Source: Lepidodermella squamata (lineage: Eukaryota; Animalia; Gastrotricha). Taken from it: DNA of 64,000 bases. Positions 7,768-58,945 of the stretch are shown piece after piece. A program made the position numbers and the translations under genes. The DNA lies in NCBI GenBank assembly GCA_047495785.1, contig JBLDXI010000029.1:248001-312000 (forward strand), in the 5' to 3' direction. Within the stretch, counting starts at the first letter, position 1; each line of letters starts with the position of its first letter. The notes under the pieces are model-generated. The model was not told where the DNA came from and did no database searches. It saw only the letters and a program-made list of their open reading frames with translations.

Positions 7768-9754
7768 ATGATTAGGCTTGCAGTATTACTAACCTTTGCT
7801 GCGTTTTGTTCCACTTCAACTGGGCATAACTCTCCAAACAGAAATTTGTGAGTGCTCAACTGTTTCAGTCGCAACATGCAATCCTAATTAAGCTTTTCAT
7901 AATGATGTAAATTTGAAAATTTCTCGTTTGACAGGTATCGAAAATATGGCGAAGATATTCCCGGGCCACGCTTCGATTCAGCACGCTTCGGGGTCAATCG
8001 ATTTTCATCTAAAATTACAACTGAAATGTTGATTGGTGCTGGAAAACCAAGATTGTCTCGGATGAACAGCGGGCAAATTTCTCCTCGGGAGGCAGAGGCT
8101 AATACACCGCGGAAGATGAAACGCCGTGATGTTAGTGCAGACGAATTTGTATCCGCTGCTGGTGAACAGGTAAGGTTCTTGTCCTCGTAATGGCTTTTAA
8201 CTACGCTGATTCATGCGCAACAAAATCAGGTTTCTATAGCAACAAAATTATATATGCTTTGATAACCTTGCATAACACTGCATTCTATCTCATAGGTGGC
8301 GTACCAGCGATGCGTTGCATCCAATGGGAATGTTTTCTGTCATCCAGAGGCTGCCGATTGCGGCGATCTTTCAAGTGCTCTCCCCGGATCTTACCCTAGC
8401 AAACAGGCGTGCCTCACAGCTAAAAAGCGGTTCTTCGTTATTCGGCAAACGCCTGACTTGCGTCTGAATTGGGAAATAGCTGACGCTCTTTGCATGATCG
8501 AATCTGGAGTTTTGGCCTCTATCGTGACGCCTGAAGAACAGGCTGAACTTCGAAAACTTCTCGCCGCTGAGTCAATCATTTCCGCTTGGGTCGGTTTCTC
8601 GAAGGACGCGACGCAGAACTTCCGCTGGGGCGATGGTACGGCGTATGAGCCCTTCGTCGATCAGTGGGGCCCAAATGAGCCGAACGGCGCTGGTAATTGC
8701 GGCTCTTACAGCATATTCCCGGCTAGGGGCGACAAGCCGATGGGTCTCTACCTCAATGACGTTGATTGCAATGCAGCTATCGGAGCGGCAGTGTGCCAGA
8801 CTTATATATTGGAACCGAGACCTACACCGAAAATGGTAATCACATAAGCTGCCCTATTTAAGAGAAGTTTCTATGAAACTCGTATCAAACTTGAAATTTG
8901 ATTGACAAGGGTCTTATCGATTCTTAACAGTATTCTTATCATCTTTAGGTCGAAGCCCAAATCGTTAATCAGCCCATCGATGAAGTTGCTGCCAGCGGGG
9001 ACAAGGTACAATTAAAGTACATGGACAATTTACCTTTCAGCATTCATCAATTAAGCTTAATAAGCTGTTAATGAAAAACAACTGTTTTACGTTTCAGGCC
9101 GCAGACACTGCAGTTAATCAGCGTCTCGGTGAAGCTGTGGTCAGTGGTAATGTTGAAGAAGTTCGACGTCTCTTAGCCTCTCCGGATGTCGACGTAAAAT
9201 GGCGCGACAACCGCACTCTTGACAACGGAGCAGTGGTCGGTGGAACGGCGCTGCACAGAGCCGTGGCCAACTCAGCCCCGGTCGAAATCGTGAAGGCTCT
9301 CATTGAGGCAGGCTTCGATGTCAACGACGAAGAGCCAGCCAACGGTTGCATGCCCTTGCACTTGTCTGCTTCTCAGAAGACGAACGAAACAATGCTTTTA
9401 CTAATCAAATCAGGCGCAGTAGTCGACGCTGTTTGTCGAGGAAACGAAAAGACAGCGCTCATCTTGGCGGTACGTGCTGGTAGGCTGGATATGGTGAGGG
9501 CTCTTCTTAACCGTGGCGCAGAAATCGACAAGGCTACGACTACCAAAGGCTATTCAGCATTGCACTATGCGGCGAAGGAAGGCACTCTAAGCGTTGTCAA
9601 GGAGCTAGTTCGCCGCGGAGCTAACATCAACTTGAGGTCGAAGAAAAACAAGACACCACTAATGATGGCGGTTAAATATGGCCACCGATCAATTGCAACC
9701 TACCTCGTCAGCCGTGGTGCAGATGAAACGGGCTGTACGGACGATGCATGTTGA
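7768..9754 (+). CDS. Gene C: secreted prepro - C-type lectin - ankyrin-repeat protein
   Basis: Exons 7768-7847 (MIRLAVLLTFAAFCSTSTG, phase 2), 7935-8169 (pro-region ...RKMKRR/DVS), 8296-8835 (CTL, EPN), ~8949-9005 (linker), 9098-9754 (ANK, ends DETGCTDDAC*). Confidence 0.85.
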
Positions 9755-10561
9755 TTTTTCGGCATACTTCTCGTTCTTTCATCAATCGTTGATTCTTTAA
9801 TGCATTTCCGGAAGTAAAATTCAAGTCCTGTTTTATTTTGTTTATGAAAGGAGAATATAAAATTTGATTGATCAGACGCACAATTTATTTTGGCCAGGAA
9901 GGAGGAAAGTTGCTTCGATATTCGGTAGCTGAAATCTGCAAAAAGTATCATTGTAATCAAATATGGTGAACATGGCGTCATTATTCCGGCAGCTGCGACC
10001 CTTGTTAATGACTATTTACTTGGAGGTTTCGCTGATCTACCACAGCTTAGCAATCATCACCTATTTCAGGACAAATCAGGACATCAGGACACTCTTAATA
10101 TTTTTCTTGACAAAACTGGCTACAATCAAACAAGATGTGTTTAGATTTATATCTCAATTTTGTTTGGCCTACGCTAAAATATTTTGATGCGATAATGTTG
10201 ATTCGATTCGAATTGGGCGGTTTGAATTATATGAACCGGCACCTGAGTGTTGCTCACCCACTCTCTTACTCTCATCGCCACAGGTACAGTTCAATCAGGG
10301 GCCGAAGTCAGTTAAGATTGTATTCCCAACTGAATGAATACAATTCTGAATGAGATTTCGCGCTTCCCACATCTGTCGCCCAAAATAGAATTATTAGGTC
10401 AGGGGGCGGCGTAATCACACGCGACATATCGCGTGGTTGATGAATGGTACAGAGTGAAGCTTAAATTATTATTTTTTAGCAGCATTTGATGTCATTTAAC
10501 TAGAATAAACTCAACCTCAATTATATACTCTTAATAGGAAGGCTTTGACTCGCTAGAAGAA

Positions 10562-12876
10562 ATGAAGACCGGAAAATTCGCTCGAAGAGCAATTCAATTC
10601 GCCTTGTTATTTGGTGTGTTGTCGCGTGAACTCGCGGCGTCAAGTCAGCATGAGTGAGCTATTTACCTTGGCGAGATATTGCTTATTCTGCTCTTCTTTT
10701 ATTTTAATCAGCGATCAGCACAGCGAACATTCCCTCCACAACCCGTCTCATTCCGAGACTTCTGCAACCCAAGAGCAACCTATCAATGGCCCAAAGTTGA
10801 GCGACACAGCGGTTCGTGACACTGACTGAGATTTACAAATCATTTTTCCATCATTTTTCACAGGTCAATTCAAAGCAACGCCGAGATGTCAGCAATCCAA
10901 AATCGACAGGGACGAGAGCTGCTGGGACGGTATCAAATCAACCAATTGAGTGATCTTTTCTTAAATTCGCAATTTTAGACTGCCTTCACGCGATGCTTGG
11001 ACAAAGATGGCTTCCCTTACTGTGCATCTGTTGCTATTGGTTGCAACTTGCGAGCTTTTCCGGCAGGTTACTCGTATCCGACCAAGCAAGCTTGCCTAAC
11101 GGCTAAGAAGCGACTTTTCACGGTGAAAGCGGATGATCGGCGGCTGACCTGGTTTGAAGCTAATGCCCTCTGCACTGGTCAATCTGGCCACCTGGTAACC
11201 GTCAAAACAGCTACGGAGCAAACCAATTTTCGTAAACTCCTCGCCTCTGAATCGATCCCTTATGCATGGGTTGGACTCCGGAAAGACGCTACCAATAAAT
11301 TCGCCTGGACTGACGGAACGCCATTTGAAGCTTTCGACATGCAATGGGGGCCTCCCGAGCCGAACGGGGACGGAGAATGCGCAGATTACATCTCTTACAA
11401 AGCTAAGGAGGGATACCCTGCGGGACTTTACTTGAATGATTTAGATTGTCTTGTCCCGGCAGCAGCTGGCGTTTGCGAGACGTTCATGCCCCGCAGTCCG
11501 ATGTCCAACAAGGTAAAGAAAATTCAGATCTGTGTCATCTACAATATGTCATTTCCGACTTCGTTGTTCCCTTTTTAGAAAGGCTATCTACGATGCGTAG
11601 CGATACTCAACAAAGGCGAGGTCACGTGTCGGCTTGCTTCCGATGGCTGCAATGAGGACGAGCAAGCAAATCCTCCTCGCTACGCCTATGCTTCTCGAAT
11701 CTCATGCGAAACTGCGCCGAAATATATGTTTGTCGTCGAACTGCCCAAGGCTTTGACGTGGCACGATGCTAGCAGCATTTGCGCAGGGAAGTCGGGTCAG
11801 CTAGCTACGATCAAAACCGAAGCGGACCACGCCGCGCTGATGGATTTGATACCGGCCGGCTCGAACCAGTTCTACTGGGTCGGCCTGACGATGGACGCGA
11901 CGCGGAAGTTTACTTGGGTCGACGGTGCGCCCTTCACGCCTTTCGATAAGCAATGGGCGCACAACCAGCCGAGTGGTGATGGCGAGTGTGCAAACTACAT
12001 TCCTTTCGACGAACAGAGAGGCTATCCGGCTGGCTTTTACCTGAACGATGCAGCGTGCTCTGCCTATGCCTACTGGGCAGTCTGCGAAAGCTACGTCCCC
12101 GTGAGTTTTCAGCGCATTACATTTTATTCAGTACGAAGTGAATCTCCCAGTCTCCTTTCAATATTTTCAAAACAATTCCTGTATTTTTATTCTCCCTCTA
12201 GTAACATGTCCATTAATGTCAATTTCAAGCAGAGTTTCTAAAGTCTAAAGAAATATTCTTTTTTGTTCTGCTTGTGAACGCTTAGTCGCCGAATGCTGCA
12301 CTTGCGATGTACAAACAGTTGGGGCATGCGTGCGCTGACGCCGATTTATCAAAGGTTGTGGAACTCGTCGATGATATCGAAACGGCATCCGGCGGAAAAT
12401 TCGACCCGGAATGGCGTGACCCAGCCGAGTACAGCTCAGATAGTTGCTATGGAAAAGTTCTCAATGGCACGTTGTTGCACCGCGTCGCCCATTGCAAAGG
12501 CAACGAAGACCAGCGCATAGAAATCGCCAACTTGCTGCTAGATCATGACGCGAACATCAACAGCAAAGAAAAAACCTGGGGCTACACGGCCTTGTACCTG
12601 GCTACGGCTAATAACATGGTGGAACTGGCGCAGCTGTTGGTCCTGAGGGGAGCAGAGGTTGACAGTAAATTGAGCGACGGCTGGACGCCTTTGTTTGGCG
12701 CGGCGTTAAATGGCCACGCCGCAGTCGCCCGTCTGTTACTGGATCATGGTGCAGAAATCAACGTAGTTGGCGACGATGGCAACACGCCACTCGACTACGC
12801 AGTTCGTTCCAATCATGCCGAGGTCACTAAGCTGCTCAAATCTCGTGGTGGTCAGTGCCGCGCGCTAGAGTGCTGA
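10562..12876 (+). CDS. Gene D: secreted prepro - 2xC-type lectin - ankyrin-repeat protein (paralog of B)
   Basis: Exons 10562-10653 (MKTGKFARRAIQFALLFGVLS.., phase 2), ~10712-10811, 10864-10929 (KQRR/DVS), ~10979-11512 (CTL, EPN), ~11579-12100 (CTL, QPS), ~12286-12876 (ANK, ends GGQCRALEC*). Confidence 0.85.
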
Positions 12877-13665
12877 GCTGTTACTCTGGAAAGTGCTATT
12901 CTTTTTCAATGATTTCCTGTTAACTGCTAAACTATCGCTTTTAAATCATGAGAAGGCTTGTCCTATAGGAATCGATTTGAAATCCATTTGAAAAAGTGAC
13001 TCGTTAATAAAAGGTTTTCTCCAGTTCGCATGCGTGTTGGTGTTTTCATAATATACCATCGGTGGGGCAACGCTATTAGCCATAAGCACAAGTGATCCTA
13101 CAATTCTAAGTGATGCAAAGTCTTGAAGTCTCGAAGTATTAGCTAATTTTTGTGGCAACACAACATGGCAAGAGTTAGATTACATCTGCTTTTCTATTTT
13201 CTCATATTTTCGTGTTATTTTTCGATTTTTCGAAGCTATCCGATTTGCTGGTGTAGAAAGGAGGAAAGTGAATGGATGTTGGTTGGCTAATTCTGATGAA
13301 CGGTCTGTCGGCGCATCGGAATGTATAAGACAAACGGGATGTACTGAGAGATCGCTTCAGAAATTCAGCTGTAGTGTCTGCGACGTTTAACGCTTCAATT
13401 AAAAAACAAACAAGATTTGTTGTTCGCATATGTTTGAAATTGCCTCGAAATTGCCTGAGCCAACGCTGAAAATCAATACGTGCATTGATTCTGAAACCAA
13501 GATTGTGGTTCAAAGTGTGGCTCAAAGCAGTTTCCAATCTTTATTGCCATGTTATCTGGATATTGTACAGAAATCAGCAAAGTAACTAACAATATTTTAA
13601 CCGGGCTAAGCTAAGTTGGATAGAAAAAGTGTTAAAAAGCATAGCGTTCGGATATAATATATCTT

Positions 13666-16600
13666 TCAGCAAGACTCCTTCTTGCATTCACCGCCGCGAG
13701 ACTTAAGCAATTTGATGACCTCGCCTTGCTTGTAGTATACAGCATAGTCCGATGGCGTGTAGCCATCGTCGCCAGCTTCGTTGATGTCAGCGCCGCGGTC
13801 CAGCAACAGCCGAGCGACTTCCAAATTTCCGTGTATAGCCGCAGTCGTCAGGGGCCTCCAGCCGTCGCTCAATTTGCTGTCAACGGCCGCTCCTCGTTTG
13901 ATCAGCAAACGCACGACCTCCAACAAGTTGTTTCCGGAGGCGAGGTACAATGGCGTGTAGCCCCATGTGCTTTCTCTACTGTCAACCTCCGCGCCGCGTT
14001 CAAGCAACAGGCGAACAATTTCCAACCGCTTGTATTCGTTGCCGTAGCATTGGGCCACTCTGTGCAGAATTGTACCGTTGCGAACTTTGCCGTAACAACT
14101 GCTGTACTCGGCCGGGTCACGCCAGTCCGGATCGAATTTTCCGCGAGCTGCCTTATCGATTTGGCTCACAAGTCTTCGCACTCCAGCAGAGTCAGCGTCA
14201 GCAGCTGCCTGGCCCAAGCGCGTGTAAAGAGGCAGCAAACTGCTTTTAGCCGGGGAGATCTGCAATGAAAATTGAAGATATTTAAGAAAGGTAAATTCTA
14301 TGAACCAGACAATCTATATAATCTTCCGAAAATTAGCTTCACCTACCGTGGTCAACAATTTGGCGATTTCGCCGAAACCCCTGCTTTTAGCAAAATCTAA
14401 AGCAGTTTCGCCCGTTGACTTTCTGATGTTGACATCAGCTCCGCGTGCTAACAGCATTTCCACCACATCCTTACGACCACTGTAGGCGGCCTCAATCAGC
14501 GGCGTTGCGCCATCAGAGCCTCTAGCATTGATTGAAGCTCCAGCGGCTATCAAAGCATCAAGAATGTCAGCATTGGCTGCGTAGGCTGCTTTGTGCACGG
14601 CCGTGACGCCGTCTTTGTCGCGCCATTTGAAGTCGAGCGAGCCTTGCTGCAGCAAACGCTTGACAGTGTCAAGATCATCGCGGCCAGCAGCTTCGTTTAA
14701 CTGCCGCTGTACGACAACTGTCGGCATGCGGGCTGTAGATGTAGGCCTCGTTACGATTAGCGTGGAGGAGACTCCCTAAGATAACATAAACGATTAAGTA
14801 TTTCAACGTTTTGGACCTTTGGAATTGAAATTTGTTGAGAGTCACGCCTATAACCCATTTTTGGCAAGCTCAATGGCCTATAACACAAATACAAAAGTTG
14901 GAAAAACGAGTCGCAGCGGTTGGCCGAAAATCGTTTGATAGGGTTATTATCTTAATTATCTGTTCAACAGGAAATTTCAAAATTTTTTATTCACACAAGT
15001 TCATGATTCCCAAAAATTTGAGCTTTAGCATTGTTTTAGTTTTGCATACCTCAGCGCCGGAGAGGATCTGGATGATATTATTGAAACCTTTTTGCCTTGC
15101 GATGCTGATAGCGCTTCTCGCACCAACCGTCACCGATTTATCCGCTCCCCTCTCAACGAGTAGCTCAACGACCGCCACGTGCCCATATTCAACTGCAATC
15201 ATGAGTGGTGTCATGCCGTCCAGCCGCTGAGAATTCATCTCGGCTCCATGATCTAACAACGCAGCGACTACTACAGGTTGTCCGGCAAAGGCGGCCTTGT
15301 GCAGAGCGGTGGATCCGGTTGCATCACGCCATTTCAAGTCCAGACGTTCATCTTCAAGCAGCCGTAGTACATCTTCGTAGTTGACTCGAACAACGGCATC
15401 GTTCAATGCTTGTTGACGCATGATCTTTTCCAAGTCCAAAGCCCGAGCAGTGGTCGCAGGAGTTTCTGTTGTTGCGATGATCGTGAAAAGCTGGATAAAA
15501 TCAATATTATTTCCAGCCAGGGAACCAGCTGTTTGACCATCGTCAGCAACTACCCGGGAATCAGCTCCGTTCTGGATCAAATACTTGGCGATTTCAAGGT
15601 GAGCATTTTTCGCAGCTAGCATCAGAGCAGTGTAACCATCCTGAGCCATAGCATTGATATCAGCGTCGTATTCGACCAGAGCCTTAACGTTAGCCAACCG
15701 GCCATATTCAGCTGCTGCCATTAAAGCGGTTTTTCCATTGGCTTCGTCGCGGCCATTGACATTCGCGCCAGATTCGATGAGGTATTCAACGATTTCAGAG
15801 GAGCTAGTTTTCGCAGCGGCGATTTCCAGAACTCTTGAACCATACTTAGTCTCCTTGGTATTTAAATTGGCACCGGCTTCCACGAGAGTTTTGACCAATT
15901 CTAGAGGAGCCTCAAGGTCCAAGGCAATGTGAAGGGCCGTTCCATTGACGATAGTCCAAGTGCCACGCTCTGATGAATCACGCCAATTAACGTCGACATC
16001 TCTATCCTCTAGTAGCTCGCGAACTTTGACGATATTCTGCTCTGTGATCGCTTTCATGAATTCCACTTGCTTGGCAACCAAATCCTTAACAAGATCATGC
16101 GAATGAGGATGAGTTTTAGACGTTGGTTACCTTTTGGTTACAGTTGCTGATATCTGGATACCACGTTGAGTTATCAAAGCAAGTTGAGCCGAGCGGACCA
16201 TTTGTGCATTCGTAGCCTTTGTTGCATTTCAGATAGATCGATGTGAATGGCGAAACAGCTGGGCCTTTGAGAACTTGGCCAGTATGAAGATCCAGCAGAA
16301 CACCGTTGGAAACCTCTGGTACCAGACATGAGCCTATTCAAGAACAAAATACATATAAGACCTCGAAGGATCTAATTCAGCTGTGAGCAGCCTTCATCAA
16401 CAATATTGCTGGTCAAATGAAATGCGTATGATTATTTTAGAATTTCCGTGTTATCGTTTTTTGAAACCGAAGAGCTGTTACCTCTGGGGCTGCAAATTCC
16501 AGGCTTTGACCAGCTGCCGTTGTTCGAGCATGCAACGAAGTCAGCTCCATGCAGTTCGTAGCCATCGTTACAGGAAACTGCGACGATGCTTCCCGGGGTG

Positions 16601-19600
16601 GTCTCTGAGCCATCATCCACTAACCCATTCGGAATTGCCGGAATCTCGCCACAGTCTGATACAGACACATAACCAATAAAAGTAATTGTATGAGTTCTTA
16701 AATCAGTTCTACCTAAATGAGATTCAACACAGGAGCCTGGCTGAGACCAAGTGCCATTCATTTGGCAAACAATGGCACCAGGGCCTTCCAAGACCCAGGG
16801 CTCCATGCATTTGATCAGAACGACAGTGCCCTGGCGAAACGGCTTTTCAGGTAAGTTAATTTCAGAGTTGAAAATTGAAGGCGGTTCATCGTTGCAAAGA
16901 GCTACACATTCGCCATCCACCAACCAGGATTCTGATACTGCTGAATACTTGACCGAACTTTGACCGACAAGCGAAAATCCCGCGGCACACGTAATCGTTC
17001 CGATCTCTGAGCAATCGACCTCGTTATCAATGAAGTATTCTATCGATCCATGGGAAACTATCATTGGCTTGGTGGATTGAACTATCCAAAAAGTTGATAT
17101 AATGTGTCAATGATTTCTAGTGATTTCTTACCTGCATGGAATTTCTGAAATTTAGCCATTTCGCCATCACCAAACTTACATTTGGTTAGGCTCTGTGGCG
17201 CGGGGCTATTTGAGCCTCGTTCACACTTGCCCGATCGGCGCATAACATCGAGAACCTGGTCATATCCAGCTAACCTTGCCCAATCAAAAATGCCAACATT
17301 TCCGAAAGCGCCCGCACACGGTGCATTGAATTTGTTGAAAAGGAGGTCGACCAGAGCCGGGCAGTCACGATCGATAGCCAGCATCAGCAAAGTCTTCCCC
17401 AGTGGGTCCTTCAGAGCCAAAGCTTTCGAAAGCTGCTCCGAATCAGAGGAAAGGATTAAAAGAATAGCCTCGACAGTCGATACGCCAGAATCGCTGCATC
17501 TAGCCGCATTGAGCAATGGAGTCCGGCCATAACTATCCGCCGTTATCGCGATTTCACGATTGTGCGTGAGCAGTAGCCTAACCATGTCGGGCTGCTGTGC
17601 GGCGATCGCGTGAAGCAATGCGATGGTGCCGTGATTGTTCGATGCTTCCTCCCTGAAGCTATCCGCGAAGATCTCTTTCAATAGAACCTCAACGAAAGCG
17701 CGAGCATTCCTCTCCACGGCCAATGTGAGCACTGTTCGGTTTTCTTTATCTCGGCTATCGAAGAGACCGCTCTGCTCGCTTGAAAACAAGCCCAGCAAAG
17801 CCACGTCAGCTTCGGCTACGGACAAAAGAGAGGTTAATGAGTTAGGAGTTAGGAATAAAGCTCCAACCAAGAATTTTTTCGAAATTGAGCCCGAAATGTC
17901 AACGCGAGCAGATTATCCCTCGAAAATAAATCCATTTTGGAAATACCTGTGATAATCAAATTCGTCCATCTGGCAGTTAACTGTTTCTGAACTATGTCTT
18001 CAAAACAGAGGGACTGCGCTATTTCCGCAAAGTTTTCCTAAACGCTCCGCCGCCGCAGAGCTCTGATTAAATATTTTACTTGAACATTTCGACGTGCTTA
18101 TTCTTAAAATTCACTTTTTACGTAGCTTTTTTACATTATTCCCGAAACTGGGAATGCGCAGTGTAATTTTAAAACAAAGCATAAAATAAAATAAAATCGA
18201 AAATAATCCTGTGTACAGTTTGATCAAACCCTAAGTAATCCATTGCCTTTTTTACAGCTGAGCTTTTCAACTTTTTCTAAAAACGGATGAATGTCTCTTA
18301 AATAAATAAATAAATAAATAAATAAATCGTTTTGCGCAATCGATGACGGTCAAACGAAATTTAGGAAATTTGGCTGGAGACGGCAGAATCATTCAAAATT
18401 AAATTTGATAATTTGTAATTTCATTGAAAGAATTGATGGAATATTATATATTTCCGAATTTTTCTATAGCTTTTGCAGCTCAACCTTGCCAATTCTTTAC
18501 CGTCAATGTCCCCGTAAAATTCTTGTAAAAATATTTTATTTTTGTGAAATAAAACCTGGAAGATTGTTTAAAAATTTAGCTCTCAGTATGATTTCGTAAT
18601 TAAGCAGTATGCTAAAAATTTAGATTATTGGAATGGAGATGCTATCTTGCTCTAATTTTAAAAATTTACGGCTCCAAATGTGAAATAATATTGTAGCTAA
18701 GCTTACTTCTATCGATTGACTGGTCAGATTGAAGAGCCATAGCATGGGCGGCATTTCGGCCTTTCGAATCGGTGGCGGCTAGATCAGCGTCATGCTCCTG
18801 CAACACTTTGACACACTCCAGCTGTCGCATGTAACTCGCAAAGTGAACCAGCGGCCCCCGATCGGCGCCCTTGACATCCCGGTTTCCTGACGTGTAAGCG
18901 CACGTCTCAGACTTGACCAAACTCCTCGTGCCCTCTTGAATAGAAAACAGCACTCGCAGAAATTCGCAGTTGCCTTTTCGAATCGCGTAGCACAGCGGCG
19001 TCTCGTCATTCTCATCCACAGCCGTTGCTTTGAAAAACAGCTTCGCAAACTGATTACGCAACATTTCGATTTTGTTCTCTTCAGCAATAACGTGCGACGA
19101 CGTTTTCACATTCTGCTTTGATGATCTCGACAATGACTGGTCAGGGAAGAACAGCTTGATCATCGCTTGGTTCTTGCTCGCCAGCGCGATTTCGAAAGCA
19201 AAGCCGCCACTGCGGTCTCTGACGTTAGGATCAGCCCCACGTTCCAAAAGCCCTTTCGCCACTTCAACGGCACGAAGCGAATGCGATTTAACAGCATAGA
19301 ACAAAGGTGTTTGGCCCTGCCAAGTTTCAGCATTGACGATTTGCTTCTTCTTATCGTCGCTCGCCTTTTCGAGTAAGAAATCAATCATCTTCAGGTAACC
19401 ATTCAGAGCAGCGAGGTGAATTGGCTGCTCGCCAAGGTTGTTACGAGCCTCGACATCTGCGCCAACTTCGTCAATGAGAAATCTCGCGGTCTTAGAAGCG
19501 TTGTAAGCAGCTGCAACGTGCAACGGCGTGTGGCCAGTGGCGTTTTGCGTCGCTTTCAGTTCACCGATGTCCGAGAATTCATTTCTGATTCTTGCAATGA

Positions 19601-20141
19601 GGTCGTAGCGAATGTATTGATTGTAAAGTTTGTTCAGTTTGTTTTGAGCCTCATCTCGTGCGCGATCGGGGTTGCCAATTTGCGCCAGAGAATCGTAGTC
19701 ATAACTCGGAGCAATCGAATGTTCGTCAGCCTCGGAATCGATTTTGCCCCTAGTAGAATTTCACGAGATTTGAATTAAAACATAATGTGTAAGGGAAATG
19801 TATCGGATTTTAGGAACCCATTTTAATGGTATCTACGTTATCTACACAATGTACTTATGTTCGAAAAAATTCCTATTTGATATGATTTAATCAGTTTTTT
19901 AGAGTGAAAAAGATAATTCATTAGCCCCATGAATTCTATCTCCCCCATAGATGAAGTAGAAAATGGCGTAAATAAAATTAAAAACTGTTTAACCAAATCG
20001 CACTGCCATAAAAAAATTATATATTATTAATTAATCCACTCACGGTACTGCGGCGTTCGCTAGGGCTGACTGACTTGTGATCGCCAACAATACAAATACA
20101 GCTTGCCAGAAGACATAGGTCCATCGATTTTGTTTTCTCAT
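13666..20141 (-). CDS. Gene E: large secreted ANK - ANK - 4xCCP - multi-ANK protein
   Basis: Signal exon 20141-20044 (MRKQNRWTYVFWQAVFVLLAITSQSALA, phase 2). ANK exons 19749-18707 and 17815-17132. CCP exons ~17080-16713, ~16655-16483, ~16333-16131. ANK exons ~16084-15050, ~14775-14348, ~14260-13666 (ends GGECKKESC*). Colinear with gene N. Confidence 0.85.
18299..18327. repeat. (AAAT)n microsatellite in an intron of gene E
   Basis: About 7 tandem AAAT units. Confidence 0.9.
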
Positions 20142-38249: not shown

Positions 38250-39368
38250 CAATTATAAACCTTTTTATGTTTCGAATTTTAGTAAAAAAGTCATTTTCTT
38301 GTGACCTTTGTCATAGCTGATGTCAGAAAGACCTTGAGGACAAATAATAGCTTTCGCTTATACGCTAAAATACGCTCACGTTTCATAAAAAGCAATTTAA
38401 AGTTTTGGCTAGTTGTTCGTTGTGTGTTTTACCAGCTGCTTAAATTAAAATTTCTAATGTTTTCATCATAGTATGAATCATTATTATTATGCCAATTCCA
38501 TACGTAAAATTTAGCGCAAAATTACGATGCATAGAAATGCGAATAGCTGGTATTAGGCAACAAGTACCGTTCTCGTTTTCGGTGTTGCCATGAGCAAAGC
38601 CTTTTTTACCGAGGTTAAAAAATCGCGAAATATAGATAATCAAAAAGAGATCTCGACGTATACCGTTCCTGCTGAATTGTACGCTCACCATATTGTTCGA
38701 TTTGTTTACTCACCATACTACCACAATAGCAGAATTTAAAATATGCATACTTTGAGCAAATCACAAATCCGATCGAATTGAGAAAAACAAATTTCGCAAC
38801 CAGGACCGCCTTGAAAAACTAAATAGGATAGACTGAAAACATCTCTTTCGAAAAATGGTGTCGCTTGCTATGGCTCCGATGGCTCCGACTTTTACCCGCT
38901 GTTATGACGAAGTGCAAAGCGATTTGTTTGATGCTAGCTCGCTTGTTTCTTGTCACTCACATCCAAGCTGCTGTATGCCTAGTTATACAATTATAACTAG
39001 CGATATATTATCTGGTTTATGTTTCCTGTGACACGAAACGCTCTGCAGAGCGAAAAAATATCACCGCTCCGTTTGGCGGAGCCTGTTACTCAATTTGCCA
39101 ACTCTTTTAACTTTTAACTTATTACACTGTGAGCAAAACGGCTCTTTATTTTTCATTTCATAATAGCCAGCATCTATTGGCATGTGACGACTAGACTCAC
39201 TACGAGGCAGTCACCCAGTCGATAAAGAGGTAAAAATGCGTAGCCCGTTTCCCGCCGCTCGTTTGCACAGGTGCTTTGCGTTAGAAAATGTTTAGCACTT
39301 CTGTTAGGCTGGGTATCAAAAAATTGCTGCTTTCACCGAATTTTATTTTTGAAAATAATAAAGAAACC

Positions 39369-40455
39369 ATGGGGACAGATCTGGGCGTAGGATTCACAGC
39401 CCTTTTCTCTTCATCACTCGTAAAATGCCTCAACCGGATTCTCCTGAAATCGCTAACATCGCCGAGCTCTGCAGAACAGCTAACCGTGCTGTACGTCATG
39501 CTGGTTCGGCCAATCACAATGGCTTTCTTCGCCATTCCTTTCGTGACACTAACGAAGTCGCCATTTTTTACATTCACGGGACGCGAATGGGTACTACTCG
39601 TGACTCGGTCTGTGGTTGCTTTCGTATCAGCAGGTGCGAATGCATTCGCCGTCACGTTGATTTCACTGTCAGATTTGACGACGATAACTTCTGTAACGCC
39701 TATGGTAACCTCATTTGTAAGTTGGCCAATCCTTGGCGAGAGACCCAAGCTATCGGATTTCCCGATCTTCTTAGTTATGATGTCAGGTATGCTTGTGAAA
39801 CCGCGACTCCAAGTAATGATTTTATCCTTATTTGTTAAAGGAATACTTTTCATCATTCAGCCGAGGTTCATGTTCGGTGGCTCTAATGACTACGCACCGC
39901 CCAACCAAGTAGGCGTGATGCTTGGCATTCTGTCCATTTTAGGCAGGGTATGATTTAGTGGAAATTTTATTCATGAGCTGTAGGATTTCTGCCTTCTAGT
40001 GTTTGAATCATACGAGCACTCGAGGGCTTCGAAATGTCCCTACAGCCAGCGCAACCTTTGTCTACAGTCTTGTTTCTTCCTTCATCTGTATAGCTATCAA
40101 TCTGGCTTTCGACAACTCGCCACTGCCGTGTTTGACGCTATCACGCTTTGAAACCCTCCTCGGTGGGCTTTTCATGTTGGTCGACATAACCATGAGCAAA
40201 TATGCCGGTCGATTCTTGCCAGCAGCGTTCTTGTCCCTCGGCGCAGGGATTGAACTGATCTTGCAGCTTCTCATTCAGCTGATATTTTTCGACAACGAGG
40301 TGAAACTGTTCAACCTAATTGGAGCGCTAATTGTAATATCGGCCTTTGGACTTATTGCTATGCGGAATTGGGTGGTCGAGTATAACGACGATGAAAAGCG
40401 CGCCGTTTGGATTAGTCGAAAACCCGGCTGTTTTATGAAGTTTCTTAATTTGTAG
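39369..40455 (+). CDS. EamA/DMT superfamily (SLC35G-like) transporter, copy 1
   Basis: Three exons (~39369-39787, ~39841-39947, ~40000-40455), about 10 hydrophobic helices. EamA-type motifs LVTRSVVAF...ISLSDLTTITSVTPMVTSFVSWPILGERP and LLIQLIFFDNEVKLFNLIGALIVI. An upstream exon cannot be excluded. Confidence 0.8.
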
Positions 40456-41057: not shown

Positions 41058-41779
41058 CTAGTGGTTCCACAATGTAAACGAGCGTAAAAGTGGTGAATTA
41101 CTGCGGCAAAAAACAATTGTTACCAAAAGCTTTATGGATTGCACGAATGTTTCATCCGGGAGTCATAGCAACGGATCGATTGACCAATCAACATGCGCAT
41201 CGGATTGGACATCGGATTGGATTGGTACCACTATCATTATAAGTTACATTGAAACGTTGGTCCAAAGAAACTTGTTCGGCTATTATTGCGGTTTACAGTG
41301 TACAGTTTACAGTTCGCTGGCCTGCTACCTGCCAGCCGTTGATCACGAAGCTACGAGCCATGCCTCAAAAACATTAGCCGCGTTTTCTTTCGATGTAGCC
41401 TCGTGACAAATTGCCACAAATTGGCTGAATGGCTTGTGGCGTGTGAACAAATATAAAATAAGCTAAATTTCCTGGACCCATTATTCTTGTTTGCTACACA
41501 CTCATCTTTCGCTGATGGCGGATCAGAGAAATGTTTTCGTAGTGCATGCGCATAGCAAAAATGATTTTTTCATTTTCAAATTGCGCTTTCACGTAAAATA
41601 AAAAATATGCTCACTTGGTGGTGGTAGTAAAACTTTAAGCGGTTCTGCGTTTGTTCAGTTGTTCTTTTAACATTTTTGTTAGTGCTAAGGCGCTCTTAGG
41701 TGCGAGTTGAGTTTCAAATGATTGCTAGGTCCGTTTAGAAAAGTTTAACCATTTAGAAATTGAAAAACCAAGGAAACAC

Positions 41780-43378
41780 ATGGGCTCAGATCTCGCCATA
41801 GGCTTATCTGCCCTGCTAGCTTCATCGCTTGTAAAATGCCTGAACAGACTTCTACTCAAATTACTTACGTCGACCGGCTCTTCAGAGCAGCTAACCGTGC
41901 TATACGTCTTGCTAGTTCGGCCAATTACAATGGCTATTTTCGCCGTGCCATACGTGACGCTGAGAAAAGCGTCATTCTTCACATTCACAGGTCGCGAATG
42001 GCTCATGCTGATACTTCGATCCGTCGTCGCCTTTGTATCTGCCACGTCAAACGCCTTCGCTGTAACGATGATTTCAATGGCTGATTTGACAACTATCACT
42101 TCCGTCACGCCCATTGTGACGGCATTCTTCAGTTGGCCCATCTTAGGCGAACGACCCAAACTATCGGATTTCCCGATTTTCCTCGTCATGCTTTTAGGTA
42201 AACTTTAAAGAGAAATACTAATGTAATTATCCATTAGGAAAAACTAGGTCAATCATGAGAAAAGTTTCAGACGGGCGAAAGGGCTCATTCGACAATGTTA
42301 GCTAATTAGCTTACATTTTCTGATAGACCCTCTCATTCGTCTACCGTTTGGGCCATAGTCTCTATTTACATGCAAAAACCAAAAACATGGCCCATTGGAC
42401 GGTAGACGAATTATTAGCTTGTACTGATTACTGATGACAATATTTGCTCTTGGACCGGTACATGCTAATAGCCTGAGCTTTATAATAGTATAGCAGTGTA
42501 CCTCAAGCCTAAAGGGAGTGATGGGGGAGTAATAGGGATTGGTTTCCCGGAGTTAAATTGTAACAATAAAAAACTCTCTTTCGAGAGTCTGGATTAAAAC
42601 CATCGGATTCTCAATATCGCGGGTGGTTTTGAGTCATGTTTAGTGTTAATAAGCGTCAGGCAGTGAGAGGGAAAACCCTTCATGTTGCAGAGAAACACTA
42701 AACAACCGCCCACCACGTTCTCCATTGACATTAACATACAATTGCTTCAATTTTCCTTAAAAGGCATAATTTTCGTCGTTCAACCGCAATTCATTTTCGG
42801 CTGGTCCGCTGACTACGCTCCACCGAACCACGTTGGAGTGATACTTGGCATCGTGTCAATTATAGCAAGGGTATCGCACTACTCTAACTCACCTGCTTAT
42901 TCTCCATTTTAATTGTTAACAGTGCCTAAACCACACGAGCATTCGCGGACTTCATGCTGTACCTACGGCCAGTGCTACATTCATCTACGCCACAATATGC
43001 TCTGTCATCACCATAGTAATCACACTGCCCTTCGATCAAACGCGCCTGCCTTGTTTGACGCTATCACGCTTCGAAACCGTCCTCGGTGGGCTTCTGATGC
43101 TGGTCGACATTACCATGAGCACATATGCCGGTGGATTCCTGCCAGCACCTTTTCTGTCGCTCGGCGCGGGGATTGAGTTGGTCCTGCAACTTATCATTCA
43201 GCTGATATTTTACGACAGTGAGGTGAAAATGTTCAACCTAATTGGAGCGCTCATTGTAATATCAGCTTTCGGATTGATCGCCACCCGAAATATCATTGTC
43301 GAAAAGTATGCTGATGAAAAGCGTCGAACCAGATTGGAGAAAGATCGTTCTTGCTGCTTGACATTTCTTACAATTTAG
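41780..43378 (+). CDS. EamA/DMT superfamily (SLC35G-like) transporter, copy 2 (tandem paralog)
   Basis: Same exon structure as copy 1 (~41780-42197, ~42764-42870, ~42922-43378) with highly similar protein; longer first intron. Confidence 0.8.
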
Positions 43379-43592
43379 CATCAATCACAGGGTGGTATTC
43401 ACTTATTTATTTGAAGACCATGATATCGATGATAGGATGATTTACAAGAAGAAAAAGATAATGCATCCGCAAGGTGCCAGGGTTGAGTAACTATTTATTT
43501 TTCACGCACAACACGCATAACCAGCTTGAAGAATGTTCCCTCTCAGTATCGTTCCAAGTGTTTTGAAAAACAGCGGATGGGATGGCAATCTA

Positions 43593-43772
43593 CAGGGTGG
43601 CCAAAAAATTCCGCAGAGCGGGAATTCGCTGCGCATCAATTTAATGAGGAGTTTTAAAAAGTTGAAGAGTTTCAAGCCTTCTTTTGCCAACGGAACTCCA
43701 CAATTACTTGCAACTCCTCATTAAGATGATGCGCATCGAATTCCCGCTCTGCGGAATTTTTTGGTCACCCTG
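43593..43772. mobile_element. Tc1/mariner-type MITE (near-palindromic, TA-flanked)
   Basis: TA|CAGGGTGGCCAAAAAATTCCGCAGAGCGGGAATTCG... ...CGAATTCCCGCTCTGCGGAATTTTTTGGTCACCCTG|TA; arms exceed 60 bp. Confidence 0.85.
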
Positions 43773-43970
43773 TATAACAAATCTTGTGACTTTTCTCGTT
43801 AACGCCCTTAGTGGAACCAGTTAAAATCCACAATTATCTGATTGGTCGGATGGTTTCAAGTCTGTGATTGGTTGGTTCAAAGAGCACGCGACACGCACCA
43901 TTTATTTCTATTTTTTTCTGCGATTATGAAAATTGAAATTTAGCGGAAAGTGACTACCTCTTGCCATCAA

Positions 43971-44267: not shown

Positions 44268-44339
44268 TCCCTGATGGTCTAGTGGTTAGGATTCCGCGCT
44301 TTCACCGCGGCGGCCCGGGTTCGATTCCAAGTCAGGGAA
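44268..44339 (+). tRNA. tRNA-Glu(TTC), T-stem damaged (possible pseudogene)
   Basis: TCCCTGATGGTCTAGTGGTTAGGATTCCGCGCTTTCACCGCGGCGGCCCGGGTTCGATTCCAAGTCAGGGAA. The T-stem CCGGG/CCAAG has two mismatches. Confidence 0.8.
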
Positions 44340-44394
44340 AGTTTTGGTCCGAAATGAGGTTTTTTGCAAAAATCACTGCTTATCGCAAGAAATC

Positions 44395-51935: not shown

Positions 51936-53277
51936 TTGTACTGAAAGCTGATGCGGATATCGTAAATTAAGGCCGTAAAACGAGATTAATGTTTATTAGG
52001 TGTAAATTTAAAAAATTGTTTTCATTAATAAAATTGAATTGAAACACATTGCATCGCGTGCTTAACGTGGAAAGGGGGCTAATACGTCGCACGCGATCAG
52101 TTGAGGTGTTGTTTTTATGTTTCTTTTCGAAAAGGCGCAAAAATTCTGTTACCCACGTAATATAATCTAAACAGATGTTATTTTATAACAAAATGTCGCT
52201 GGTTGTTGAAATGACATAATTAAAATTAATCGCGCCAGGATCACGATACAATTTCAGAGAGATATAAAATGACTTGCTCTGAGAGGGCAAAAATCATGTC
52301 AAACGTTGATTCGGTTTCTTAACTATTTTCTGCGGTCAAGATGAGTCAAACGGACGGTTATAAGAAATTGAGCGCGCATCGTTGGCGAATCAATTTCTGA
52401 AATGAACATCATAGGCAAAGTTTCCTGCCTGATGTCATCCTGGCAAGGCGATTGTATCGCGTGATTAACAATAGCATGTTGATTAATACCAATCAATACC
52501 TAGTTATGCAGTTCTTATTTTTTCAATGTTTATTGGAGAACTCCCATTTTACTTCTTTATCCTGTTCTCATCATCTGCATGTCAAATTTTTCCGATCAAT
52601 TAATGCTGGTCAAACTTGGATTACAAATTGTTACACCCTGTCAAGAGCTCGAATGGTAATCAAAGACACGGCTGATTTGCATATGTGGATAATACCCTCG
52701 ATCAATCTGGATAATTTGACGAAAAAACGAGTGTTGTCACTCATTTGAGATTTGATCGCTGAGATTCCTGAACTGGTCGTTAAAAGGTGTTATTTAGGCA
52801 AGCACTGTTTTTTTTATTTCTCCTCGAATTTTCGGGTCGCAAATAATCTAACTTACCTTGAACTTGAAATCCAAAGATTAGAGCTGTATAATAGTTCATT
52901 GCCCAAAAACCAGCTCGGGTGTTTACATTGGCAAATCTTTCGCATCCGCTGCAAAGATTAGATTGAGTTTCCCGAAATTCCGGGGAGACTAAACTAAACC
53001 ACTCAAGTTATCGTAATAAGAACGGAACATCAAACCTATCTGATATTTTGCCATGGAACTTTCATGTAAATCTCAATCCCAACGCAATGCTTCGTCTTTA
53101 AAATCTGTATGCTTGAACTCAACTGAACTAACAAATAAAGCTACATGTAGAAATCATTGTGTGACATCTGTTATTTACTTTTTGAACCTGACACCAATAT
53201 CTATTCGGTCTATTCGGGAAACGCCGAGTCTAATTTTATAGCTTCAGCAGTGATTTGAAACAAATTTGAAGTACACT

Positions 53278-56200
53278 ATGACATTTCTACGATGGACCTT
53301 ACGCTTGAAGCTAGCTTTCCTGTTCATGGCGATACCCGATTGCGTCGTTTTAGCGAATGGCTCGAAAACGTAAGTGAATAAAATATATAATTCGCTTGCC
53401 AACGTTAGCCAACTTGGGAAAATGAAGATTGTTTCTCTAGAATCATCGCTTATTTCGAATGTTATTTTCTCTAGTGGGAAAATTCATGTTGAGGCTGGTG
53501 AGCACTCGCTGGCTTCGTCTTACGACTACGAATCTCTGGCGGCGAAACTTGTCACCAATGAGCCATCACGTGAGCAGGGTCAAAACAGGCTGAATAAACT
53601 CTACAATCAGCACATTCGCTACGACGTATTATCGGCAATCAAACGAGATTACCCCAATGTAAACGATTTGAAGATTGTTACAAACGCATCTGGCCATACA
53701 CCCCTTCATGTAGCAGCATTTTACAGCGCTTTGAAGACAGCTACATTTCTCGTCGATGAAGTTGGTGCCGATATCGAGGCTCGTAACAATCTTGGCGAGC
53801 AGCCAATTCACCTCGCCGCTTCAAATGGCCACCTCAAAATCATCGATTTCCTACTCGAGAAATCTGGCGACGATAAGAAGAAGCAATTTGTGAATGCCGA
53901 AACTTTGAATGGCGAAACACCTTTGCTCTACGCTGTAAAATCTCGTTCGACTCGTGCTGTTGACGTTGCGAAAAGACTTTTAGACCGAGGAGCTGATTCG
54001 AACGTCAGAGACCGCAGTGGCAGCTTTGCTTTCGAAATCGCCCTGGCAAGCAAGAACCAAGCGATGATTAAGCTGTTCTTCCCGGACGAGTCAATGTCAA
54101 GATCGAAGCAGAACGTGAAAACAACGTCGCACGTCATTGCTGAAGAGAACAAAATCGATCATTTGCTGAATAATTTTACAAAACAGTTTTTCAAGGCTGC
54201 CGCTTTGGATGAACATGGCGAGACGCCGCTATGTTACGCGATACGTAAAGGCAACTGCAACTTTTTACGGCTTTTGTTCTCAGTTCGGGAAGACACGAAA
54301 ACTTTGGCCACATCTGACACCTGTTTCTATTCGGCTGATAATCGCGATGTGAAGGCCAAGGGCGTCGTTGATCGGGGCCCACTGGTTCATCTTGCGAGTT
54401 TTCTGCGTAAAACGGAGTGTGCCAAGGTTTTGAAGGAGGCAGGGGCTGATCTTGCAGCTACTGATTCTAGAGGCCGAAATGCTGCGCATGCTATGGCTCT
54501 TCAATCCGATCAGACAATCGATAAACGTTAGTTGGATTCTCAATTTTTTTAAATTCGGCTAAAATACCATGACTTTGCTTGATCATAATTTATAAGTTCT
54601 GTTTGAACATCTTTTGGCATTTTAATCGAAAATTAACAGCTGATGTCGATGAAGAACTGATTAAAATCTTGCTCGACGAGCCGGCCGGTCTTTTCGATGG
54701 CCGCGATCATAACAACCGAACTGTGCTAGCCTTAGCCGCGGAGAAGAACACGCGAGCTTTCGTTGAGGTTCTGTTAAGAGATATCTTTTCGGAAAGCTTC
54801 AGCGACGAAGAACCGAGTAATCATGGCACGATCGCACTGCTTCACGCTATCGCTACACAGCAGGCTGAGATGGTCAAGCTGTTGCTGCCCTACAGGCGTG
54901 AAATTGCAATGTCATTGGATAGTCATGGCCGGTCTCCGTTGTTCAAAGCAGCTCGGTGCGGTGACTCTGGTTCGAAAACCATCGAAGCAATCCTGACACC
55001 CATTTCTTCCGACTCGGAGAAGCTCTCCAAGGCTTTGTCTCTGAAAGACTCGACCGGCAAAACATTGCTCATGCTGGCTGTCGATCGAGATTGCCCAGCT
55101 TTGGTCGACCTTCTTCTCAACAAATTTAACGCACCTTGCGAGGGAAGTTTTGGCAATGTTGGCATTTTCGATTGGGCTAGGCTAGCTGGGTATGAGCAAG
55201 TTTTTCAAGTTATGCAACAGTCTGGCCGGTGCGACAAACCTAATGTTAGCGTTACATCGCAGAGTTTGCGAAAATGTGTGCTAGATGAAGGCGATATGGC
55301 GCAATTCCAAAAATATCAAAGCAGTATGTTTCGAGAATCCATGAAAATTCAACTTTGAATTTTGCCTTTATTATGTATTATAGTTCAATCTTCTAAGCCG
55401 AAAAAAGTTTCCAATGGACTGATTGAATACTCCCCGAAGAGCGATGACAGCTGCTCTGATATCGGAACCATAACTTGTGACGCAGGATTTTCGCTGATTG
55501 GTCCAAGCTCGGTTAAGTATTCAATAGAAGATGGATCCTGGATGGTAGAGGGCCAATGCCTTGCGGCTTGTAGCGACGAGATTCCTTCAGTTCCCAACTC
55601 TGAGATGGCCGAGCCTGATAAGCCGTTTGTTCACGGCACAGTTGTTTCTTTCAAGTGCATGGAACCATTGGTCTTAGAAGGCCCTGCTGCTATCGTTTGC
55701 CAGAGGAATGGCACTTGGTCTCAGCCTGGCAGCTGTGTTGAATCTAATTTAGGTAGAAATTACTAGCTAAATCGAAATTTGATCTTGAATTGCTGAATTA
55801 CTATATAATATCAGACTGTGGCGAGGTTCCGGCAATTCCGAATGGTTTGGTTGATGATGGCTCAGTGACTACCCCGGGAAGCATAGTCGCAGTTTCCTGT
55901 AACGATGGCTACGAACTGCATGGAGCTGACTTCGTTGCATGCTCGAACAACGGCAGCTGGTCAAAGCCTGGAATCTGCAGCCCAAAAGGTAATAGCTCTC
56001 AAAGTTCGAAAAATGATCACACGAAAATTCTCAAGCGCTCATCAATTCCAATTGAGTCCCAGTATTTCGATTGAACCATGTGCAATTCTAAATTAGATAT
56101 TTTGAGGTCGACGAAAATTCTAGTAATTTATTCTTGAATAGGTTCATGTCTAGTTCCAGAGGTTTCGAACGGTGTTTTGCTGGACCTTCATACTGGCCAA

Positions 56201-58945
56201 GTTCTCAAAGGCCCAGCTGTTTCGCCATTCACATCTATTTACCTGAAATGCAACAGAGGCTACGAAAGCAAAAATGGTCCGCTCGGTTCAACCTGCTTTG
56301 ATAACTCAACGTGGTATCCAGATATCAACAGCTGTAACAAAAAGGTAAGTAACGTATGCGGCTCATCCTTATTTATCGTATGCCCTTGTTGTAGGATTTG
56401 GTTGCCAAGCAAACAGAGCTCATGAAAGCGATCACTGAGCAGAATATCGTCAAAGTTCGCGAGCTGCTAGAAGATAGAGATGTCAACGTAAATTGGCGTG
56501 ATCCATCAGAGCGTGGCACTTGGACTATCGTCAATGGAACGGCCCTTCACATTGCCTTGGACCTTGAAGCGCCTGTAGAACTGGTCAAAACTCTCGTCGA
56601 AGCCGGGGCTAATTTAAATGCTAAGGAGGGTAAATACGGCTCAAGAGTTCTCGAGATCGCCGCTGCGAAGACCAGCTCCCCTGAAATCGTTGCATACCTC
56701 ATCGAATCTGGGGCGAATGTCAATGGCCGTGACGAAGCTAATGAAAAAACCGCTTTGATGGCAGCAGCGGAATACGGCCACCTGGTTAAAGTAGACATTT
56801 TGGTCAAATACGGTGCTAACGTCAACGCTGTTGGTAAGGATGGTTACACGGCTCTGATGTTAGCGGTGAAGAAAGCTCACCTGGATATTGTCAAGTATTT
56901 GATCCAGAACGGAGCTGATTCCCTGATAGTGGCTGACGATGGTCAAACAGCTAGTTCCCTGGCTGGGAATAATATCGATTTTATCCAGCTTTTTACGGGT
57001 ATTTCGACAACAGAAACTCCCACGACCACTAATCGGGTATTGGACTTGGAGAAAGTCATGCGTCAACAAGCATTGAACGATGCCGCTGTTCGGGCCAGCT
57101 ATGATGAAGTGCTGCGATTGCTTGAAGGTGAAACTCTGGACCTGGAATGGCGCGATGCTACCGGATCTACTGCTCTCCACAAGGCTGTTTTTGCTGGACA
57201 GCCTGTCGTAGTAGCTGCGTTGTTGGACCACGGAGCCGAGATGAATTCTCAGCGGCTGGACGGCAAGACGCCCCTGATAATAGCAGCTGAATATGGCCAC
57301 GTGATGGTCGTGGAACTGCTCGTTAAGAAAGGAGCGGACAAGTCCGTCGCGGTTAGTGGGAACCGTGCTGTCGACATCGCCAGGCAAAAGGGTTTCACGG
57401 ATATTGTACGCATTCTTTCTGGGAACAGGGTATGCTTTAACCAATAACAGACAGCTTGAGACAGCTGAGACATAGGTATTCTTTAGAAGAGTTTTGAATT
57501 TTTTAGAAGAATTCAAATTCCTGTCAGGTTATTTTTATTGGATTCTTCATCCTTCGAAAATTACACATTTTCATTTAATATCAATACTTTCATCAATACT
57601 ACTTCAATAATTCCCAAAATATTTAATAATTGAAGTAATAAATGAATTGAACTTGTAGATCGCCTATCTCTCGACAATCGCCACTAAGCCCACCTCTACA
57701 ACTCGCACGCCAACGGTTGTGTTGCAGCGGCAATTGAACGAAGCGGCAGGCCGCGGCGATCTTGACACTGTTGGCCGCTTGTTGGAGCAAGGATCACTTG
57801 ATTTAAATTGGCGTGATCAAAACGGCGTCACAGCGGTGCATAGAGCAGCCTACACAGCGAATGCTGACATTCTCGATGCTCTCATTGCCGCTGGAGCTTC
57901 GATCAATGCGAGGGGCTCAGATGGTGCTACGCCGCTGATTGAAGCTGCTTACAGCGGCCGTGGTGACGTCGTGAAAATGCTGCTTGCTCGTGGCGCTGAT
58001 GGCAAAATCAGAAAATCGACTGGTGAAACAGCTCTGGATTTCGCGAGAAGCAAGGGATTCAGTGAAATAATCAAACTGTTGGCTCCGGTAGGTGAAACTT
58101 GGATAGTTAATATTTTAAATTCAATAAAGGATAATCGAAAGCCACTTAGATTTATATGTTAACCCTATTCGGAAAATTCGGCATGGCGATTTCACGAGAG
58201 TCTATAAGGCACAACATGTCAACGTTTTATAATGGAAACTGGACTTTTATGATGAGTTGTAGGTTGATTATTTCATGTCTCTCTCTAGGCTGGCGATCCG
58301 GAAGTCAACAGGCGTCTCGGCGAAGCCGCTGCCAGGGGCAACTCGACTAGAGTTCAGGAGCTACTCCAGACTCAAGGTATCGACCCGAAATGGCGCGACA
58401 ATCGTGTTCTCGACAACGGCAATGTCACGGGTGGAACCGCGCTTCATCGCGCCGTAGTGAACGCAGCTCCGCTCAGCATTGTGAAGGCCTTGGTTAAAGC
58501 CCGATTCAACGTGAACGAAGCTGAACTAGGCAACGGCTGCATGCCACTGCACCTGGCTGTCAGCCAGAGAACAACTAGCACATTGCTGTACCTGATTGAG
58601 ATTGGCGCAGATGTCGATGCTGTATGTTCGAAACCCGGAATAACGGCACTTATGATAGCAGCGTATAATGGAAGATCGGATATGGCCACAGCCTTACTCG
58701 ATAAATCTGCTGAAGTCGATAAGGTTTCGACGAAGGAAGGCTACACGGCTTTGCACTATGCGGCTGAGAAAGGCCAGCTGGGCGTCGTGAAGTTACTGCT
58801 GCGTCGCTCTGCGAATATTAACGCGAGATCGAGGTACAACGAGACTCCGCTCATGAGAGCTGCCGCGAATGGGCAGGCGGCTGTTGCGCGTTTCCTTATC
58901 AGGATGCAAGCCGATAAAACAGGCTGTGTTAGCAAGTACTGCTGA
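53278..58945 (+). CDS. Gene N: large secreted ANK - ANK - 4xCCP - multi-ANK protein (inverted paralog of E)
   Basis: Signal exon 53278-53369 (MTFLRWTLRLKLAFLFMAIPDCVVLA, phase 2). Exons ~53475-54526, 54640-55324, 55384-55751, 55815-55988, 56142-56344, 56395-57429, 57659-58087, 58289-58945 (ends DKTGCVSKYC*). AATAAA near 59025. Confidence 0.85.

Follow-up and report, generated by a model that had tools for sequence, protein, structure and literature searches.

The region analyzed here, hereafter the window, is a 64,000-nt stretch of the 121-Mb Lepidodermella squamata assembly (contig JBLDXI010000029.1 (C29), positions 248001-312000). It contains two long genes, E (20141-13666, minus strand) and N (53278-58945, plus strand), in which a signal peptide precedes ankyrin-repeat (ANK) and Sushi/CCP exons, and three C-type lectin (CTL) genes, B, C, and D, that also end in an ANK cassette. 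The domain order is lectin-lectin-ANK in B and D and lectin-ANK in C. Pfam detected Ank in exons 1 and 2 of E and N, Sushi in three exons, and Ank again in the large, penultimate, and last exons. From the signal peptide, Sushi modules, and ANK cassettes the E and N proteins are apparently secreted, and inspection of their open reading frames (ORFs), the only check made, revealed no membrane span. E and N have eight exons in common, including the signal-peptide exon, whose phase-2 donor joins exon 1 in frame at a homologous position in both. Their last exons are of different types: E-last resembles the end of lectin gene D, and N-last resembles the end of lectin gene C. In all five genes (B, C, D, E, and N) the last intron is phase 0 with canonical GT..AG sites, and the same holds for the introns flanking the E and N penultimate cassettes.

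Paralogy within the window was examined by self-BLASTN of the window DNA and by global alignment of E with N. In the self-comparison, E 14335-19758(-) matched N 53467-58099(+) at 75 to 79% DNA identity, and the global alignment was colinear from the signal-peptide exon through the penultimate exon at 64 to 93% identity. The match stops 12 nt past the conserved donor of the last intron; most other E/N introns are saturated too. Global identity drops from 74% for the penultimate exon to 44 to 50% over the final intron and exon, a level that a forced alignment gives as background. Exon 2 of E and exon 2 of N were 67% identical to each other and the next best match, gene H of the window, reached 39%. 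Judged by these matches, E and N are each other's only close paralogs.

The last exons have other relatives. In the self-BLASTN, D-last 12376-12858(+) matched E-last 13684-14160(-) at 70.8% over 483 nt, and C-last 9189-9665 matched N-last 58380-58856 at 65.8% over 485 nt. D-last and E-last lie tail to tail, 790 bp apart, and make up a diverged inverted repeat. The gap-free alignment of N-last with C-last spans all 218 residues between acceptor and stop, at 56% identity. E-last, D-last, and C3-last, the terminal cassette of a short gene on another contig (C3), are colinear to a common stop (61% and 61%). Genome-wide, the best match of N-last was C-last at 250 bits, with the next at 125 bits, making C-last its sole close relative; the best matches of E-last were C3-last (268 bits) and D-last (254 bits).

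We placed 47 cassettes (every cassette in the window, 20 relatives of E-last from across the genome, and two cassettes of contig C3) in a maximum likelihood tree and weighed alternative topologies by the approximately unbiased (AU) test. C-last paired with N-last (support 100/100), and E-last joined the other type as (E-last,(D-last,C3-last)) at 100/99, with the upstream cassette of the C3 gene as sister (95/89). Upstream of the last exon, the penultimate cassettes of E and N formed a pair, as did each half of the large exon with its counterpart (support 100 in every case). A clade of E-last and N-last was rejected (delta lnL 118, p = 2e-60), as was one uniting the last exons of B, C, and D (p = 1.8e-4). 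The E/D/C3 clade of cassettes stands behind three front ends (ANK-Sushi, lectin-lectin, and signal peptide-ANK), and the N/C clade behind two (ANK-Sushi and lectin).

A first-pass annotation of the window had described E and N as colinear over eight exons with last exons of different types, E ending like D and B and N ending like C, each type being found on both CTL and ANK/CCP front ends; it expected trees of the single exons to conflict. The motifs that it quoted are present in the sequence, and our alignments bear out the colinearity and the difference in last exons. Its assignment of N-last to the gene C type agrees with the tree and with the genome-wide scores, and its combinations of ends with front ends stand, the E/D type having a third front end in the C3 gene. 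The contrary outcome that it named, E-last grouping with N-last, is the topology rejected most strongly above. The part that concerns gene B has to be amended. E-last belongs with D-last, whereas B-last is longer, a distant relative of the E/D type at 42% identity to D-last, and lies outside the supported D/E/C3 clade; its placement within that group was not rejected by the AU test (p = 0.08). The tree conflict holds for E-last/D-last and N-last/C-last against the E/N pairing of the upstream exons. The lectin exons of B and D (5070-6045 and 11102-11997) are 70 to 73% identical in DNA.

Table 1. Genes, exons, and terminal cassettes of the window (positions counted from the first nucleotide of the window).
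Feature	Position	Strand	Details
Gene E, part shared with N	14347..20141	minus	signal-peptide exon, two ANK-rich exons, three Sushi/CCP exons, two-cassette ANK exon, penultimate ANK cassette; Pfam Ank and Sushi
Gene E, signal-peptide exon	ATG 20141, donor after 20044	minus	phase-2 donor
Gene E, two-cassette ANK exon	about 16100-15049	minus	Pfam Ank
Gene E, penultimate ANK cassette	14775-14347	minus	donor ACG|GTAGGT
E-last, 'GKFDP.WRDP'-type ANK cassette	13666..14259	minus	phase-0 acceptor gcag|ATC at 14260/14259; 197 residues; four conserved Cys; Pfam Ank
Gene N, part shared with E	53278..58087	plus	signal-peptide exon (ATG 53278), ANK-rich exons, Sushi exons, two-cassette exon, penultimate cassette
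Gene N, two-cassette exon	56398-57423	plus	Pfam Ank
Gene N, penultimate cassette	57659-58087	plus	donor CCG|GTAGGT
N-last, long 'WRDNR.LDNG'-type ANK cassette	58289..58945	plus	phase-0 acceptor ctag|GCT; 218 residues; intact; Pfam; predicted splice
Gene C, lectin exon	8296..8835	plus	Pfam Lectin_C; donor ATG|GTAATC after 8835
Gene C, candidate signal-peptide exon	at 7768	plus	signal-peptide scan
C-last, terminal ANK cassette	9098..9754	plus	acceptor position, length, and stop identical to N-last
Gene D, two C-type lectin exons	10997..12100	plus	intron 11511-11576; donor CCC|GTGAGT after 12100; CTL ORFs
D-last, terminal ANK cassette	12286..12876	plus	acceptor seen in RNA-like contigs
Gene B, two C-type lectin exons and B-last	4950..6969 (B-last 6214-6969)	plus	lectin exons paralogous to those of D
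Cassettes with type 1 tail	1051-1476(-), 27728-28240(-), 37938-38249(+), 9098-9754, 58289-58945		genes A, J, H, C, and N

Gene C may contain a 57-nt in-frame micro-exon (8949-9005, AG|...|GTACAA) between its lectin exon and C-last; the reading frame is kept without it.

The C-terminal tails also fall into two types. E-last ends in ...SRGGECKKESC and N-last in ...ADKTGCVSKYC, each followed by the stop. Tail type 1, G-A-[DN]-x-[TD]-[GC] with the last Cys 4 to 8 residues further on, occurs in A, J, H, C, and N, and tail type 2, R-G-G-x-C-x3-4-C, in D, E, C3, and B. Because H, the nearest paralog of E and N, has an N-like tail, there is a weak hint that the end of N may be the ancestral one.

Four Cys are conserved in each terminal type, two lying in the C-terminal tail, and the internal penultimate cassettes have none; the terminal cassettes presumably contain disulfides. 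Folds were predicted for E-last and N-last as single cassettes. E-last (predicted local distance difference test score (pLDDT) 94, predicted template modeling score (pTM) 0.90) was modeled as a two-helix cap, a β-hairpin formed by the GKFDP...YGKV insert, and four repeats, and N-last (pLDDT 90) as six helix pairs. In these models each is a complete capped ANK domain by itself, so that a swap need not disturb folding.

In the short gene on contig C3, a signal peptide is followed by a single cassette of the GKFDP type and then by the terminal cassette, which shares 80% identity with D-last. At the DNA level, window 12283-12921 matches 4920-5556 (minus strand) within C3:53000-62999 at 81.8% identity. 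The homology begins no more than 3 nt from the D-last acceptor and ends 45 nt past the stop, and therefore the shared unit is essentially the exon. With synonymous divergence (dS) of 0.51, D-last/C3-last is the youngest pair of the set, and the match reads as a younger, exon-bounded copy of a cassette between contigs. ANK cassettes are hugely abundant in this genome, with about 3,000 to 3,400 first-look candidates per query. Those of the GKFDP type stand behind Sushi modules, alone, or in tandem arrays; a lectin front end preceded such a cassette in none of the 14 other loci sampled.

The age and constraint of the exons were estimated by the Nei-Gojobori method, for which dS values of 1.2 to 2 are near saturation and make dating by dS weak. 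With that limit, dS was 0.49 to 1.24 for the exons shared by E and N, 1.55 for E-last/D-last, and 2.05 for N-last/C-last. Path lengths in the cassette tree were 0.16 to 0.27 between the E and N cassettes and 0.69 and 0.73 for the E-last/D-last and N-last/C-last pairs. The ratio of nonsynonymous to synonymous divergence (dN/dS) was 0.08 to 0.22 across all pairs, about 0.18 to 0.21 for the terminal cassettes, and 0.18 for both partner pairs. These values indicate that the four terminal cassettes have been kept functional by purifying selection.

The D/E region (10950-16900) was compared with reads of two runs, the public, RNA-like run X1 and the independent DNA run X2. In X1, cover was zero in the intergenic interval 13139-13536. 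X1 contigs contained the GT..AG joints 11510>11577 and 12100>12286, so that the second lectin exon of D is spliced to D-last. Loose ends of X1 at 14350 and 14249, read against the sequence, correspond to the junction of the E penultimate and last exons at the predicted GT/AG, and a loose end at 15049 corresponds to the E large exon joined to the penultimate exon. X2 shares many X1 variants and shows 1 to 2% differences. It covered every bin of 10950-16900 at even depth, yielded a gap-free contig at 13629-14266, and had no loose end at 14260-14350.

We consider germline exon shuffling, in which the 3′-terminal phase-0 cassette exon was replaced in one of two duplicates, the probable origin of this mosaic. 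From the observed paralogy, tree conflict, intron phases, and spliced junctions of D and E, we tentatively infer the mechanism, direction, and timing of the recombination as follows. The genome holds a gene family of very large size whose modular products are apparently secreted. In these proteins ANK repeats come as self-contained capped cassettes, one exon each, between phase-0 introns, and the modules in front of the cassettes are a signal peptide with C-type lectin, Sushi/CCP, LDLa, or protease. E and N would have arisen by duplication of an ancestral signal peptide-ANK-Sushi-ANK gene, the copy lying inverted at a distance of about 35 kb. A recombination or duplication breakpoint in the last phase-0 intron would then have left E and N with terminal cassettes of different origin, E with the GKFDP type, whose near relative ends D, and N with the long type, whose sole relative ends C. 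We favor a partial duplication in which copying of the front end broke off within the last intron and a resident neighboring terminal exon was taken up, because E-last and D-last lie tail to tail at so short a distance and because their split is not younger than that of E and N.

Several points weigh against an exchange of this kind. The splits of E-last from D-last and of N-last from C-last seem to be at least as old as the E/N duplication, and a simple copy from D or C after that duplication would fit only if the terminal cassettes evolved faster. Because of these ages, present-day D and C were probably not direct donors to E or N after the duplication. The breakpoint can be placed only to "the last intron": most E/N introns are saturated, so that a breakpoint there looks the same as decay. 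No relic of a displaced cassette or lectin exon was detectable near E, N, C, or D, and a search near these four genes for the alternative cassette gave no trace at an E-value below 0.1. The splice that joins the N penultimate exon to N-last is a prediction from sequence. At the E junction, the sole X1 unitig that spans it lacks 2 nt (14250-14251), so that in that sample E-last would be cut short after its third codon; neither the assembly nor X2 has a gap at this position, and the deletion may be a polymorphic frameshift or a unitig error. In the tree of lectin domains, the position of C as sister to the first lectin domains of B and D is supported weakly (67/0). By score, the first lectin domains of D and B are the nearest to that of C (159 and 138 bits, all others at most 103).

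The order of the splits speaks for an ancestor of E and N that already held both cassettes, either as alternative 3′ exons or in series, with each copy keeping one and no exchange with the lectin genes at that time, since last-exon splits that predate the E/N splits would put both types before the duplication. We nevertheless regard such differential loss as unlikely. Neither the last intron nor the downstream DNA of E or N retains a relic of the other type, and each gene has one terminal cassette, as is not expected of alternative 3′-terminal exons of one gene. The two cassettes each end in a Cys tail of the terminal type and a stop, which argues against their having stood in series, and earlier shuffling would still be required to put the same cassettes on lectin genes.

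E/N identity is uneven along the genes. A central tract (about E 15400-16430 and N 56040-57090) is 85 to 93% identical, including an intron, and the flanking exons are 64 to 79% identical, which suggests later partial gene conversion between the inverted paralogs in this tract. Conversion on a larger scale, by which exons 1 to 8 of two older, distinct genes with different ends would have been homogenized between the inverted copies and the last exons alone would reflect the true deep history, would account for this unevenness and for the spread of exon dS, yet it is decidedly unlikely. The flanking exons are 21 to 35% diverged, so that, had the whole 5.4 kb been converted, that event too would be old. 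The colinearity takes in every splice position and the signal-peptide exon as well, neither front end is found in a third gene, and the mosaic with the lectin genes would still call for shuffling.

If E-last or N-last were a separate gene or a dead exon downstream, no chimeric protein would exist. The purely predicted N junction and the early stop in the unitig over the E junction speak for this explanation, which is nonetheless very unlikely, as the RNA-like unitigs join the E penultimate exon to E-last at the predicted GT/AG. Neither last exon has its own start codon or signal peptide, and each begins directly after a polypyrimidine-AG, in phase 0. The penultimate donor is conserved with no in-frame stop before it, so that a downstream exon is needed, and dN/dS of about 0.2 in the last exons also argues against dead sequence. 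An assembly error joining unrelated pieces at both junctions is scarcely credible: cassette-rich regions are collapse-prone in principle, but no error was found, the X2 depth is even with no loose end at the E junction, the paralogs are 20 to 35% diverged and too distant to be confused, and the RNA-like junction matches the assembly. Chance resemblance of the terminal cassettes was considered as well and was rejected by the genome-wide scores and the AU test.

Replacement of the terminal exon in one duplicate therefore remains the explanation that we prefer, at a strength below that of the first-pass annotation, which had spoken of direct evidence of shuffling. The exchange is read from the tree conflict, the breakpoints being eroded and no displaced exon surviving; the mosaic itself is real and far beyond chance. 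In classical exon shuffling (Gilbert; Patthy), symmetric-phase modules such as EGF, Sushi/CCP, kringle, and LDLa are distributed among clotting and complement proteins. The E/N case has the same features: each module corresponds to a single exon, its flanking introns are of one phase, it recurs in unrelated contexts, and the histories of module and gene conflict. The partner modules (C-type lectin, Sushi, LDLa, and trypsin) are classic shuffled modules. Classical shuffled modules are typically phase 1-1, and ankyrin is normally an intracellular fold. In contrast, the mobile module here is a multi-repeat ankyrin cassette, the exon replaced is terminal, and the introns are phase 0. The process is thus classical, and what is new is the instance and the kind of module, an extracellular-type ANK cassette with phase-0 introns. 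As a shuffling case it is well resolved and should be useful, combining statistical support, matching intron phases, and partial RNA confirmation.

The first-pass annotation had also compared the mosaic with the exchange of polymorphic-toxin tips. There is a likeness to polymorphic toxins (Rhs and contact-dependent inhibition (CDI) systems) in that a conserved front end is combined with alternative C-terminal modules. The comparison fails otherwise: we found no toxin domain, immunity gene, orphan or silent downstream tips, or near-identical recombination flanks, and the events took place in eukaryotic spliced genes, are old (dS at least 1.5 for both partner pairs), and were followed by purifying selection. 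There is no sign of ongoing, recent, or recurrent toxin-like tip exchange at the E/N pair, nor of rapidly evolving tips. There is also a likeness to repeat-cassette repertoires such as the leucine-rich-repeat (LRR) cassettes of the lamprey variable lymphocyte receptors (VLRs) and the designed ankyrin repeat proteins (DARPins). As in these, repeat-protein binding scaffolds are built from capped cassettes, and cassettes are used combinatorially. Unlike in lamprey VLRs, the exchange would be germline, rare, and ancient rather than somatic, and a binding or immune role is putative.

On this reading, a large undescribed family diversifies by recombination of cassettes among front ends (C-type lectin, Sushi-ankyrin, and ankyrin only) besides duplication, a point relevant to the ways in which binding diversity could arise in it; cassette trees would then be expected to conflict with scaffold trees across the genome. 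It is possible, though we hold it with little confidence, that the E/N-C/D mosaic and the D/C3 copy are traces of a genome-wide germline process in which disulfide-capped extracellular ANK cassettes were transferred again and again, one exon at a time, between secreted scaffolds of the lectin, Sushi, and protease kinds. The outcome would be a set of recognition proteins built combinatorially on ankyrin, comparable to the innate repertoires based on LRR or Ig. A search of E-last against 5.8 billion proteins, restricted to targets of 0.55 to 1.75 times the query length, returned only generic ankyrin proteins that matched part of the query at 49% identity or less, and neither an ortholog nor an annotated model was among them. 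N-last against 1.84 billion representative proteins was uninformative, as giant ankyrin proteins with many matches dominated and nothing exceeded 41% identity. The housekeeping protein UTP23, encoded on another contig, had no more than 48% identity to any database protein; its best named match was from a chiton (45%), with ticks, snails, and nematodes next, which places the animal among the protostomes. A search of one library of papers turned up no description of secreted ankyrin-lectin or ankyrin-Sushi families.

A tandem pair of genes for multi-span membrane proteins (39349-40400 and 41760-43323), unrelated to the ankyrin family, is 73 to 75% identical in DNA. In the self-BLASTN, three palindromic stretches with a perfect center, with self-inverted matches at 77 to 87% identity, lie at 3453-3953, 43591-43774, and 61240-61539.

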